This document shows, piece after piece, positions 5,851-16,027 of a DNA stretch of 64,000 bases (position 1 is the stretch's first letter; each line of letters begins with the position of its first letter). Origin of the DNA: Macrostomum lignano (taxonomy: Eukaryota); contig NIVC01001954.1 in NCBI GenBank assembly GCA_002269645.1, positions 62,001 to 126,000 of the forward strand. The letters are read 5' to 3'. Made by a program: the position numbers and the translations under genes. Below the pieces are notes generated by a model. That model was not told the DNA's origin. It did not search any database and worked only from the letters and a program-made list of their open reading frames with translations.

Positions 5851-8116
5851 TCAAAGTCCCATTCGGAACGCCAGTCTGCCAAAGTAGTAAGTTATCAGAG
5901 CAGCCAGGACCACGAAGGCCAAGGGAACTAAATAGAAAATGGCCTGCTTCTTAGAATTCTCATAGTTCTGCGTGTTGATGGCGATGAGTTGCTCCTCAGA
6001 TAGGGGAGAAACTGCGGTGATGGGCGCCTGGCTCGTTTCAGAGGCTGCTGCTGGCGACGTGGTGGTCGGCGTACTTGTGGTAGTTGGAGTAGCTGTGGTA
6101 GTTGGAGTAGCTGTGGTAGTTGGAGTAGCTGTGGTAGTTGGAGTAGCTGTAGTAGTTGGAGTAGCTGTAGTAGTTGGAGTAGCTGTAGTAGTTGGAGTAG
6201 CTGTGGTAGTTAAAGTAGTTGTGGTGGTGGGTGTAGTCGTGGTGGTGGGTGTAGTTGTGGTGGTGGGTGTAGTTGTGGTGGTGGGTGTAGTTGTGGTGGT
6301 GGGTGTAGTCGTGGTGGTGGGTGTAGTTGTGGTGGTGGGTGTAGTCGTGGTGGTGGGTGTAGTTGTGGTGGTGGGTGTAGTTGTGGTGGTGGGTGTAGTT
6401 GTGGTGGTGGGTGTAGTTGTGCTGGTGGGTGTAGTTGTGGTGGTGGGTGTAGTTGTGCTAGTCGCGAGATATCTTAGGGGAATGCAACAGATAAACTGTG
6501 CCGAATGAGGAGAGAAGACTTGCTCCTTCAACTCTCTGGTGCTGTGCTCAATGACGATTCCGTAGTTTGACGCTGTTACTTTCTGCTTGAAATATTTGTC
6601 ATATAGAGGCAATCCTGTCGCGCGTAACTTCGGTCCATGGGTGTTGTTCAACCTGTACGGTGGTTCTTCGTATGCCATCAGGCAACCGTCAGAACATCCG
6701 CTTTTGATGGAGTTGAACACGCTGGATTATCAATAAATGAGGAAATATTCTACATCGGCACTTATCCGAGTGTTAAATCAGATTCAGACAGTCAGCACAA
6801 CTCACGAACTGAAAGCTGATCGAGCAGCGGTCTCAGTCAGATCGATCAGCGTCTCTCCGCTGGTCAGGCTGCAGGTGGTCGGCGCCTCCCAGAACTTCAT
6901 AGAATAGCCGCCACGTCGAAAGCAAAAGGAGCGGCCGTCGCTCGAGTTGGCGCAGGTGTAGCCAGAAGCCGATGCTGGGCAGCAGGTCAGGTTGGATATC
7001 GGACACACGCACGCTGTTATCTACTTTTATCGAGCTCCAATGAGTCACGTTGACTGTGGTGTCCGTGATCACACCGACTGTTGGGTTGGCCTCTGTGCTG
7101 GTGAAGACTTCGCTAGACGGGCTCACGTCGGTGCTGGAGACGTACAGCTGACTGGTCTGGCTGCGCCACGCAAACACCCTGTCTGCCGGGCTGGTGCGGG
7201 CGGCCATGCTGGCTCCGATCCAGTACCTTGACGCGCTGATGCCGCTGCAGATGGAGTAATAAAAACTATGTCGATGAGCTGAGAAGTTATTTTTTAAACT
7301 TTTGTGTGTGAGTGTGCAGCATGGGTTAATTTAACTAACGTCTTTCCAGACAGTTAATTAGCTCGTAGGAGACAAATGTTTTGGCAGAAACGCAATCAAA
7401 ATTGGGCAAACGTTAAATATCTACAAACAAACAGATAGATCTTAGAAATTTAGTGTAACGGTAAGTGGGTTGATGGTTGGGACACAAGCGGATCAGTGCG
7501 TGCTCAACAATAAATGCAAGTGATGTCTGATATCGAACATCGATCAGAGTCGAAGGCAAAGGTGAGTTTTTTATTTAAGATGCAGTTCGAAACCAAATTG
7601 CGTCGTAAACGCACGAACAACTCGAGCAGCAATCGAAGGGAAATCATTTCTTGAGTTAGTCGACCAAATCGATTAATTTAATATGGTGTTTTTAGCAATA
7701 ATCTTCACTTGTCTATGTGTTGTGTATATTGTTTGAGTATGGTGCAAGCAACAAATATTTTCGTAGTCCTTTAGGGCGAGACACTCTTCTCTGGTGGACT
7801 TTCCCAACTTCTCTGCTCTAAACTGACTTCGTGACTTTTCGTTTCCCAGCGTCGTTTGTACTCACCTGGTCAATGTTGTAAAATTATCGTAGAACAGTTC
7901 AAACGATGGCTGATCCAAATTCTGCATCCCGAAGCTCGAGCAGTAGGTGCCCACATAGGCATCGTCACCCAGAATGCTGATGTTGTAGCATCGGTCCGCC
8001 TTGCACAGCACCGCGGAGCTGAGGACCTGCCCGTCTGTCAGCCTGCCTGCCGACAGGATGATGGCGCACACAGCCCACAGGGCTGCCAGCTCAGTAAGCT
8101 GGCTTCGTTGTAGCAT
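5851..8116 (-). pseudogene. C-type-lectin-like/mucin-stalk membrane gene, copy 1 (exons 8116-7866, 7244-6806, 6721-5851), frameshifted by a 17-bp deletion in exon 2
   Basis: Same three-exon, phase-2/phase-2 structure as copies 2 and 3, but exon 2 is 439 nt against 456 nt. CATGCAGATGGCGTAGC is missing at ~7011, giving a premature TGA at 6833-6835. Exon 3 (lectin half, PTTTTT stalk, TM) is still open. Confidence 0.85.
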
Positions 8117-13194: not shown

Positions 13195-16027
13195 TTAGAC
13201 GCCCATTTGATAAGCAAGCCTGCCAAAGTAATAAGCAATCAGCACTGCCAGAACCAGAAACACAACAGGGACCAAATAGAATGTCGCCTTCTCTTTTGAA
13301 TTCTCGTAGTTTTGAATGTTAATGGCCACGACTTGCTCCTCTGACAGCGGAGTGACAGCTGAAGCCTGCTTGGTAGCAGTCGATGCTATCGGGGTGGTGA
13401 TAGTAGGTGTGGTTGTAGTACTCGGCGCAGTTGTAGTGGTAGTCGGCGTAGTTGTTGTGGTAGTCGGCGTAGTTGTTGTGGTAGTCGGTGTAGTTGTTGT
13501 GGTAGTCGGTGTAGTTGTTGTGGTAGTCGGTGTAGTTGTTGTGGTAGTAGTTGTAGTAGTTGTAGTCGTTTCTACAGGTGTAGCAGTGCATACAAACTGG
13601 CCAGAACCCCCGCTGGTGTCCCTCTCTTCCAGGTACCTGATTCCACCTGTGCCAGAGTCTTTTTCAATGGTAATTCCGTATCTGGCATCGTCTGTTTTCT
13701 GCTTCAAGTATCCGTCCTTCAAAGTGAAACCTTCCGCAAGCAGTTTCGGCCCGTAGCTATCGTTGAACCTGTACGGCAGCTCCTCGAAAGCCATCAGGCA
13801 GGTGTCATGACAACCGGCCTTGAAGGTGTTGAAAACACTGGAAAAAAGATTTTTTCCAATTATTACTATCCATAAAGGGAAATAGAATCAGAGAACTGTG
13901 AGTGCAGTAAAACGTACGCATGAAAGGCCACCCGAGCAGCGGTCTCAGTCAGATCAATCAGCGTCTCTCCGCTGGCCAGGCTGCACATGGTCGGCGCCTC
14001 CCAGTACTTCTTTTTGGAGTCGCCACGTCGAAAGCAAAACGAGCGGCCGTCGCTCGAGTTGGCGCAGGTGTAGCCAGAAGCCGGTGCTGGGCAGCAGGTC
14101 AGGTTGGATATCGGACACACGCACATGCAGATGGCGTAGCCGCTGTTATCTACTTTTATCGAGTTCCAATGAGTCACGTTGACTGTGGTGTCCGTGATCA
14201 CACCCACTGTTGGGTCTTCCTCTGTGCTGGTGAAGACTTCGCTAGACGGGCTCACGTCGGTGCTGGAGACGTACAGCTGACTGGTCTGGCTGCGCCACGC
14301 GAACACCCTGTCTGCCGGGCTGGTGCGGGCGGCCCTGTGGACGCCAGTCCAGTACGTCGTCTCACTGACGCCACTGGAAAGTCAGGTAAGGATGTAGCTC
14401 GTACGAGCTCTTTTTACGATCGTCGTTTCTCGTAGGGACGAATCGTCAACGGAAAACTCACGATAATTATTGATTTTCTATTTCCAACTATGAGCTTTCT
14501 GGCTGCCCGTCATCCGTCATCATAGGCATTCCAGTTTAGCATTCCAGTGAATTATGAGACGGACTAGGCCTACAAGCTACGTTCCGCAATGCTTCACGCC
14601 AGTCCCTCTATTCTGCAGGTTAAGGCTGGTTGGGGGTCGTCTAGTCAGTGCTACAGATTCAGTAGGGCTCACCTAGTCAGAGCTGCTATGTCAGCAGTGA
14701 ACAGATTCAGTAGGGCTCACCTAGTCAGAGCTGCTATGTCAGCAGTGAACAGATTCAGTAGGGCTCACCTAGTCAGAGCTGCTATGTCAGCAGTGAACAG
14801 ATTCAGTAGGGCTCACCTAGTCAGAGCTGCTATGTTAGCAGTGAACAGATTCAGTAGGGCTCACCTAGTCAGAGCTGCTATGTTAGCAGTGAACAGATTC
14901 AGTAGGGCTCACCTAGTCAGAGCTGATATGTCAGCAGTGAACAGATTCAGTAGGGCTCACCTAGTCAGAGCTGCTATGTTAGCAGTGAACAGATTCAGTA
15001 GGGCTCACCTAGTCAGAGCTGCTATGTTAGCAGTGAACAGATTCAGTAGGGCTCACCTAGTCAGAGCTGCTATGTTAGCAGTGAACAGATTCAGTAGGGC
15101 TCACCTAGTCAGAGCTGCTATGTTAGCAGTGAACAGATTCAGTAGGGCTCACCTAGTCAGAGCTGCTATGTTAGCAGTGAACAGATTCAGTAGGGCTCAC
15201 CTAGTCAGAGCTGCTATGTTAGCAGTGAACAGATTCAGTAGGGCTCACCTAGTCAGAGCTGATATGTCAGCAGTGAACAGATTCAGTGAGGCTCACCTAG
15301 TCAGAGCTGATATGTCAGCAGTGAACAGATTCAGTGAGGCTCACCTAGTCAGAGCTGATATGTCAGCAGTGAACAGATTCAGTGAGGCTCACCTAGTCAG
15401 AGCTGATATGTCAGCAGTGAACAGATTCAGTAGGGCTCACCTAGTCAGAGCTGCTATGTCAGCAGTGAACAGATTCAGTAGGGCTCACCTAGTCAGAGCT
15501 GCTATGTTAGCAGTGAACAGATTCAGTAGGGCTCACCTAGTCAGAGCTGATATGTCAGCAGTGAACAGATTCAGTAGGGCTCACCTAGTCAGAGCTGATA
15601 TGTTAGCAGTGAACAGATTCAGTAGGGCTCACCTAGTCAGAGCTGCTATGTCAGCAGTGAACAGATTCAGTAGGGCTCACCTAGTCAGAGCTGCTATGTT
15701 AGCAGTGAACAGATTCAGTAGGGCTCACCTAGTCAGAGCTGCTATGTTAGCAGTGAACAGATTCAGTAGGGCTCACCTAGTCAGTGCTGCTATGTTAGCA
15801 GTGAACAGTTCAAACGATATCTTGTCGAGCTTCTGCATCCCGAACCTGGCGCAATAGCTACTCAAGTAGTCACCGTTTCCAAGAATGCTGATGTTGTAGC
15901 ATCGGTCCGCCTTGCACAGCACCGCGGAGTTGAGAACCTGCCCGTCTGTCAGCCTGCCTGCCGACAGAATGATGGCGCACACAGTCCACAGGGCTGCCAG
16001 CTCAGTAAGCTGGCTTCGTTGGAGCAT
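13195..16027 (-). CDS. Type-I membrane protein with tandem C-type-lectin-like domains and mucin stalk, copy 3 (exons 16027-15777, 14373-13918, 13837-13195)
   Basis: Exon 1 (251 nt) and exon 2 (456 nt) have the same lengths as in copy 2. Contains YWTGV, a (PTTTTTT)n stalk and TM TFYLVPVVFLVLAVLIAYYFG. Confidence 0.85.
14650..15808. repeat. 48-bp minisatellite (~24 copies) made of the exon-1/intron-1 junction of lectin copy 3
   Basis: Minus-strand unit TTCACTGCTAACATAGCAGCTCTGACTAG|GTGAGCCCTACTGAATCTG. The last unit overlaps the true exon end at 15777. Confidence 0.95.

Follow-up and report, generated by a model that had tools for sequence, protein, structure and literature searches.

The receptors of group XIV (thrombomodulin, CD93, endosialin/CD248, and CLEC14A) are type I membrane proteins. 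Their N-terminal head is formed by a C-type lectin-like domain (CTLD) that does not bind sugars and is followed by a mucin-like stalk of Ser/Thr residues, a transmembrane (TM) segment, and a short tail. Invertebrates commonly have surface genes of CTLD-like or mucin-like type that evolve fast and are specific to a lineage; the CTLD expansions, such as the clec genes of Caenorhabditis elegans, are tandem, fast-evolving, often restricted to a single lineage, and devoid of Ca2+- and sugar-binding motifs, and their products are mostly secreted and recognized by the Pfam profile Lectin_C. A trio of paralogs in the flatworm Macrostomum lignano invites comparison with both. The genes, here called A, B, and C, are located head-to-tail on the minus strand at positions 5851-16027 of a 64,000-nucleotide stretch of contig NIVC01001954.1 (positions 62,001 to 126,000 of the forward strand; hereafter the window). 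With somewhat better than even confidence, they are read as a tandem family, restricted to Macrostomum, of type I glycoproteins that span the membrane once, are displayed for binding, adhesion, or the glycocalyx, and have a divergent CTLD as their first head module. A lineage-restricted mucin-stalk surface protein with an unrecognized head is, as a kind, unsurprising.

Like the group XIV receptors, the proteins of the trio have the type I layout of head, mucin-like stalk, single TM segment, and short tail, and the first module of their head (module 1) gives a weak alignment with a CTLD profile in which thrombomodulin is included. They differ from these receptors by the absence of EGF and sushi modules and of the inner CTLD disulfide, by an additional Cys-rich second module (module 2), and by a tail of 8-9 aa. 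Sequence homology is not detectable: the CTLD of thrombomodulin scores 32 bits on Lectin_C, whereas the trio gives no match. The membrane-tethered mucins MUC1, PSGL-1, and CD164 share with the trio a signal peptide, Pro/Thr repeats of variable number, a single TM segment, and type I topology. By contrast, the trio has a large, disulfide-rich N-terminal head and lacks both a SEA domain and a cytoplasmic signaling tail. The clec genes of C. elegans resemble the trio in their tandem clustering, their restriction to one lineage, and the missing Ca2+ and sugar motifs, but the modules of the trio fall below every profile threshold, and the proteins are anchored to the membrane on a mucin stalk. A C-type lectin domain is present also in Mlig-ap1, an adhesive protein of M. 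lignano (PMC6410801). The trio is unrelated to this giant glue protein, which is secreted and contains vWD, EGF, and Lys/Arg-rich regions; the homology searches yielded no Mlig-ap1 match.

Gene models and protein architecture

Translation of the minus strand and reading of the splice junctions gave three coding exons for each gene:

5851..8116, minus strand: gene A, exons 8116-7866, 7244-6806, and 6721-5851; frameshifted, with a spliced length of 1561 nt, which is not a multiple of 3
10164..12252, minus strand: gene B, exons 12252-12002, 11872-11417, and 11325-10164; coding sequence intact, 622 aa
13195..16027, minus strand: gene C, coding exons 16027-15777, 14373-13918, and 13837-13195; coding sequence intact, 449 aa

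Introns 1 and 2 are both in phase 2 and have GT..AG borders in A, B, and C. An initial annotation of this DNA had described a tandem family with identical exon phases, which agrees with the same orientation and the uniform phase 2 of the three paralogs. A fourth copy was not found in the window, where tblastn with the heads and tails matched A, B, and C only. The same annotation had assigned a full protein to each copy; this holds for B and C but not for A, which is broken by a 17-bp deletion that had been overlooked. The signal peptide, Thr stalk, TM segment, and short tail that it had listed are all present in the intact B and C.

The N-terminus resembles a signal peptide and ends with (T/A)VCAIILSA/G, with the cut before GRL. 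The head comprises about 290 aa (residue 28 to ~322) and contains 14 Cys in C, enough for seven disulfides, and 15 in B. It consists of two modules of about 125 aa each, module 1 from C38 to C166 and module 2 from ~C187 to C319, with a Cys-rich linker between them, C(166)MC(168)VC(170)PISNLTC(177)C(178)P. Each protein carries five sequons for N-glycosylation. The head is followed by a Thr/Pro stalk and a conserved C-terminal anchor module:

6040..6468, minus strand: stalk of A, 143 aa, 72% Thr, 18-bp repeat
10395..11063, minus strand: stalk of B, 223 aa, 68% Thr, 18/39-bp repeats
13402..13572, minus strand: stalk of C, 57 aa, 82% Thr, 21-bp repeat
10164..10330, minus strand: anchor module of B; equivalents in A at 5851-6017 and in C at 13195-13361

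The Pro content of the stalks is 12-17%. The repeat arrays, which were detected with Tandem Repeats Finder (TRF), must have expanded independently, because the repeat unit differs between the copies. In the anchor module, a juxtamembrane segment (PLSEEQ..AIN.QNYENSK) precedes the only hydrophobic TM segment of the protein (19-20 aa; FYLVP...YYF; ~10194-10253 in B) and a tail of 8-9 aa with the sequence GRLAFRMGL or GRLAYQMGV. The combination of a Pro/Thr/Ser repeat domain with a signal peptide and a single TM anchor is a mucin-like architecture, a term that denotes an architectural class and not a family of homologs.

Relatives of the trio

The head of C matches two proteins among 5.8e9 clustered proteins, both of them fragmentary entries of M. 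lignano. One (UniRef A0A1I8GDE4; P0001) is 98% identical to C and is a fragment that starts at exon 2; the other (P0002) is 89% identical to the head of C and is frameshifted at its 3' end. In an exhaustive HMMER (phmmer) search of 1.84e9 cluster representatives, the cluster of P0001 was the only true match. A second phmmer match, to a 790-aa protein with PQQ-like beta-propeller repeats (P0003), covers only 43 residues and is spurious. The conserved anchor module had no homolog in the library search, so that the idea of an anchor cassette shared with other heads found no support. As far as the searched libraries show, the family is lineage-restricted, and its public record consists of broken gene models; literature searches yielded no account of the family.

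These results agree with the view of the trio as an orphan, lineage-specific family, whose only relatives are the two M. lignano entries. The further statement that it could not be assigned to any named family needs qualification: there is no match to a curated profile, but both relatives carry automatic names, and these conflict, because P0001 is called "Apple domain-containing protein" and P0002 "C-type lectin domain-containing protein". The precomputed Pfam column is empty for both entries.

Evolution of the copies

The introns and flanks of the three genes are about 40-54% identical between the copies and are effectively unalignable. The coding exons diverge unevenly. The number of synonymous substitutions per site (dS) amounts to 0.5-0.74 for exon 1 but exceeds 1.3 in exon 3. 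In the C-terminal half of module 2, the amino-acid identity is 53-59%, with dS >1.3 and a ratio of nonsynonymous to synonymous rates (omega) of about 0.2; in the anchor module, A and B differ from C with an omega of 0.05 and a saturated dS (>2.7). The simplest reading is that A, B, and C are old duplicates under purifying selection: the genes appear both old and constrained because dS is saturated while omega remains at 0.05-0.2. Judged from the sequences, A and B are the closer pair.

Three tracts depart from this pattern. The signal-peptide tract is homogenized (dS 0.05-0.09), and so is the core of exon 2:

C 13933..14335, B ~11432-11834, and A ~6821-7206, minus strand: homogenized core of exon 2, ~400 nt, near-identical in all three genes

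The dS of this core is 0.04-0.18, and the identity ends short of the exon borders. The last 201 coding nucleotides of A and B are 99% identical, and the similarity of this pair extends 82 nt past the stop codon into the 3' untranslated region (UTR) and 58 nt upstream of the ATG. The GC content at third codon positions is raised in the homogenized tracts (0.72-0.75 vs 0.53-0.63). Most likely, patchy gene conversion has kept the signal peptide, the exon-2 core, and the 3' ends of A and B alike. M. lignano has been described as a hidden polyploid (PMC10468722), and homogenization that is confined to exons and stands beside saturated introns bears on the evolution of tandem families in such a repeat-rich genome.

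Fold of the head

The initial annotation had proposed a double CTLD fold without sugar-binding motifs. The motifs that it listed are present: a C-x4-CY start, a YW(T/I)G core, and AIC. Its statement that residues for Ca2+ and sugar binding are missing is equally borne out, with no EPN, QPD, EPS, EPD, WND, or W.D anywhere in B or C, and so is the lack of an inner disulfide in module 1: there is no Cys between residues 59 and 166, which means that the canonical C2-C3 bridge is absent. Candidates for the other canonical positions are C38 and C43 (C0/C0'), C59 (C1), and C166 (C4). Of the fold itself, what stands is a marginal profile signal in module 1; module 2 gave none, and Pfam and PDB are without a match.

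The signal in module 1 comes from hhalign comparisons with 100 column shuffles as the null. Against a broad CTLD profile (effective number of sequences, Neff, 4.2), which extends a CD209-type profile by eight validated CTLDs and divergent metagenomic CTLDs, module 1 reached a score of 19.0 (P=0.015), which was attained by 1 of 100 shuffles. The alignment is collinear over 120 columns and places CY, the alpha1 Cys, YWTG on WIGL, FAW on WxW, and AIC on the last Cys. A positive control, thrombomodulin compared with the broad profile built without it, gave P=1.8e-6. Each of the eight validated sequences was confirmed by a Pfam scan, in which they scored 32-101 bits on Lectin_C; they include the Ca-independent CD69 and NKG2D, with the divergent thrombomodulin at the lower end of the range.

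Module 2 carries C197, C214, and C319 and has two further Cys at non-canonical positions, C245 and C249. By eye, its N-terminal half fits the CTLD consensus (CF, WEA..MC, G..L..L, and ...AF), and its later part offers YRFNDS for WxWxDG and QFVC at the end. The two modules are built alike. The distance from the beta1 Cys to the alpha1 Cys is 16 vs 17 aa, that from the alpha1 Cys to the last Cys is 107 vs 105 aa, and in both modules a phase-2 intron follows 22-24 aa past the alpha1 Cys. Modules 1 and 2 may therefore descend from an ancient internal duplication; because they share no sequence similarity, it is the spacing and the intron phase alone that point to it.

Several results weigh against the reading of the trio as membrane proteins with a CTLD in the head. 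A Pfam scan of B and C (E<=10) found no Lectin_C (PF00059) and also no PAN_1/PAN_4, EGF, SEA, or vWD domain. Searches of all PDB chains with phmmer and hmmsearch, using the head and per-module profiles, found no CTLD. Against a profile of CD209-type CTLDs, both module 1 (P=0.24; score reached by 32 of 100 shuffles) and module 2 (P=0.39; 55 of 100) were within the null distribution, as was module 2 against the broad profile (P=0.61; 85 of 100), and hhalign detected no similarity between modules 1 and 2. AlphaFold2 returned unusable models, with a mean predicted local distance difference test (pLDDT) score of 32.3 (whole head) or 36.8 (module 1 alone), probably because the input alignment was shallow, with 3-6 near-identical rows. 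The number of Cys in the head of B is odd (15), with an extra residue at position 250, where B has DCC vs DTC/DGC. Finally, the full reading frame of C is obtained from the first of 24 identical splice donors only, because the codon after each donor is an in-frame TGA, and C may be mis-spliced. The extra Cys of B (exon 3, 11417-11325 region) may stay a free thiol or engage in a disulfide with another molecule.

Other hits in these searches were discarded. The Pfam matches to RseC_MucC (E=0.0027; TM segment) and to RIFIN and DUF4786 (Thr stalk) are artefacts of the TM segment or of low complexity, and the PDB matches to glutamate decarboxylase, an aminotransferase, and a nanobody had E values of about 1. 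A Foldseek search of PDB with the AlphaFold2 models gave noise without a CTLD, an outcome that carries no weight given the poor quality of the models.

The strongest competitor is a head that is not a CTLD at all, either a new Cys-rich fold or a known small disulfide domain such as PAN/Apple, with CTLD-like motifs that are coincidental. The failure of Pfam, PDB, and the CD209-type profile to produce a match agrees with such a head, as do the missing C2-C3 disulfide, WND, and EPN/QPD and the UniRef name of P0001, "Apple domain-containing". Compared with a profile of seven Pfam-validated PAN domains, module 2 scored slightly above the shuffles, 6 of which among 100 reached its score. That alignment, however, is gappy, with 9% identity and P=0.1, and neither PAN_1 nor PAN_4 was matched in Pfam, which argues against PAN/Apple (PF00024, PS50948). 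The collinear, full-length alignment of module 1 to the broad CTLD profile (P=0.015) also weighs against a non-CTLD head. The order of secondary-structure elements in both low-confidence models (beta-beta-alpha-beta-alpha-beta...) is that of a CTLD and hints, if weakly, in the same direction. On this evidence, a head without a CTLD is somewhat unlikely.

The assignment of module 1 as a very divergent CTLD that retains just the outer C1-C4 disulfide and lacks the inner C2-C3 one is accordingly rated somewhat more likely than not, whereas a CTLD fold in module 2 is a tentative assignment that falls short of even probability. The term "lectin-like" in the initial annotation was a reading by eye, and sequence profiles from Pfam and PDB detect no such domain. 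Membership in the CTLD family (PF00059, PS50041) is not shown by these comparisons, and the head escapes the current domain libraries. It constitutes a hard test for the detection of very divergent CTLDs.

Possible function

By their sequence, the proteins are type I membrane proteins of the secretory pathway, with a cleavable signal peptide, a disulfide-rich head, a repeat stalk of mucin type, a tightly constrained TM segment, and a very short tail. In the favored reading, that of displayed membrane glycoproteins with a divergent CTLD, the stalk would be densely O-glycosylated and hold the head tens of nanometers above the membrane, beyond the glycocalyx. The proteins would act as non-signaling molecules in binding, adhesion, a barrier, or the glycocalyx, because a tail of 8-9 residues is unable to signal alone; given the constraint on the TM segment, a partner in the membrane is conceivable. 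A ligand of module 1, if there is one, would be bound independently of Ca2+, since no Ca2+ or sugar site is apparent, and Ca2+-dependent sugar binding is unlikely because EPN, QPD, and WND are absent.

Alternatively, the proteins may be mainly barrier-forming or lubricating membrane mucins, in which the O-glycosylated stalk does the work and the head serves folding, oligomerization, or shedding. Stalks of 68-82% Thr that are highly variable in length and whose repeats expanded separately in each copy would fit such a role, as would a tail too short for signaling. The head, however, accounts for the larger part of the protein outside the repeats; it evolves under purifying selection, with an omega of about 0.2, and is partly near-identical across the copies, and the Pfam scan detected no SEA, vWD, or other mucin-type module, which makes a role as mere mucins unlikely.

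A more specific proposal sees in the head a new recognition module, specific to Macrostomum and evolving as a mosaic, in which the scaffold is shared while the specificities have diversified. The homogenized exon-2 core reaches from the last part of module 1 across the Cys-rich linker into the first part of module 2, and the flanking N-terminal half of module 1 and C-terminal half of module 2 diverge to 53-80% amino-acid identity. Such a head would suit the recognition of self and non-self, of gametes, or of partners in an outcrossing hermaphrodite, although we consider this proposal improbable.

If the favored reading of displayed, possibly CTLD-headed glycoproteins holds, M. lignano, a model of regeneration and reproduction that is amenable to transgenesis, possesses a family of mucin-stalk surface proteins that is private to it. 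The trio would be a candidate set for work on cell-surface recognition or the glycocalyx in flatworms.

Splice donors of gene C and the lesion in gene A

Two further features of gene C had been overlooked in the initial annotation:

17012..17104, minus strand: non-coding 5' exon of gene C, with the donor GTATGG at 17011; the acceptor ...ACTCAG is at 16034, 6 nt before the ATG
14653..15812, minus strand: 48-bp minisatellite in 24 copies, covering the final 36 nt of C exon 1 and the greater part of intron 1

The 5' exon is evident from the database entry P0002, whose residues 1-31 are translated 5' UTR: they match 17104-17012 with 100% identity and then continue into SEMLQRS. Because this N-terminus corresponds to 17104-17012 spliced to the acceptor at 16034, gene C has a non-coding first exon, and the exactness of the splice suggests that P0002 reflects transcript evidence for a C-like gene. 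The 5' exon starts immediately after an AG (TCGCAG/AGCCTG), and a further exon upstream or spliced-leader trans-splicing is possible. AG acceptors are located 6-9 nt before the ATG in genes A and B too. At 16959-18265, a ~1.1-kb satellite adjoins the 5' exon of C; its repeat unit measures 51 bp (minus-strand sequence HHHHSCTIITPAPSSLL).

Intron 1 of C has a length of 1403 nt and consists mostly of the minisatellite, whose copies follow each other at an exact spacing of 48 nt. The unit comprises the last 32 nt of exon 1 and the first 16 nt of the intron, and all 24 copies carry the identical consensus donor CTGACTAG/GTGAGCC with the in-frame TGA. The minisatellite is a natural array of competing splice donors and, like the homogenized exons, bears on the evolution of tandem families in a repeat-rich, hidden-polyploid genome. 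The junction of exons 1 and 2 in P0002 uses another donor, located 39 nt upstream, and exon 1 is missing from P0001; the odd first exon of these gene models may reflect the difficulty caused by the donor array.

The lesion of gene A is located in exon 2, where 17 bp (GGCTACGCCATCTGCAT) that are present in B and C are deleted between 7013 and 7012. The deletion removes GYAICM, including the Cys of the terminal IC of module 1, and the resulting frame runs into several stops. The original frame stays open downstream (72 + 290 codons) and evolves like the frames of B and C. Rescue by a cryptic intron was considered; the only GT..AG pair checked by eye near the deletion spans 50 nt and does not restore the frame. 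Gene A is probably either a pseudogene or an assembly error, and because the downstream frame is still open and evolves like those of B and C, the lesion would be recent, allelic, or an artefact of assembly.

That the trio is a decaying cluster, with A as a pseudogene, C impaired by 24 competing donors with stops, and B as the only copy that could still function, is very improbable: the frameshift in A, the donor minisatellite of C with a TGA in frame at every copy, and public C-like gene models that are fragmentary or use another donor would be expected of such a cluster, but B and C maintain intact frames over 622 and 449 codons with an omega of 0.05-0.2, and the open, B/C-like frame of A past its deletion points to a recent lesion or an artefact.

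Other features of the window

The window is very rich in repeats, and the genes that neighbor the trio are unrelated to it. Large satellite and microsatellite arrays, which account for a large share of the window, yield long spurious open reading frames (ORFs) in several frames and show a GC skew of up to 0.57. The remaining features are as follows:

769-2640, 25079-26425, 31071-34365, 34642-35558, 46321-47698, and 53352-53978: satellite or microsatellite arrays
2707-4434, plus strand: two long ORFs that resemble exons of a cation-channel gene, by eye similar to TRP channels or polycystins, to the left of gene A and on the opposite strand; the first ORF (2707-3234, plus strand) matches Pfam Ion_trans with E=1.3e-5
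19057-19671, minus strand: exon matching SARA_C (Smad anchor for receptor activation-like, C-terminal) with E=9.7e-12
36628-37209, minus strand: ORF that is CUB-like by eye and has no Pfam match; it runs into ~1.3 kb of Pro/His-rich repeats (region 35577-37209)
39580-40095, minus strand: ORF with a CUB domain (Pfam E=8.6e-8) and a hydrophobic, signal-peptide-like N-terminus
51955-52731: QS/NQ-rich, microsatellite-like tract upstream of the homeodomain exon
54183-55133, plus strand: exon that encodes part of a homeodomain, its C-terminal half (Pfam E=1.8e-8), and after it poly-Gln
58027-62623, minus strand: non-LTR (long terminal repeat) retrotransposon of the LINE type (long interspersed nuclear element), with an ORF1-like region (61700-62623), reverse transcriptase (59650-60894), and RNase H (58027-59262)

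The retrotransposon is probably frameshifted, because its parts are located in separate, overlapping ORFs.

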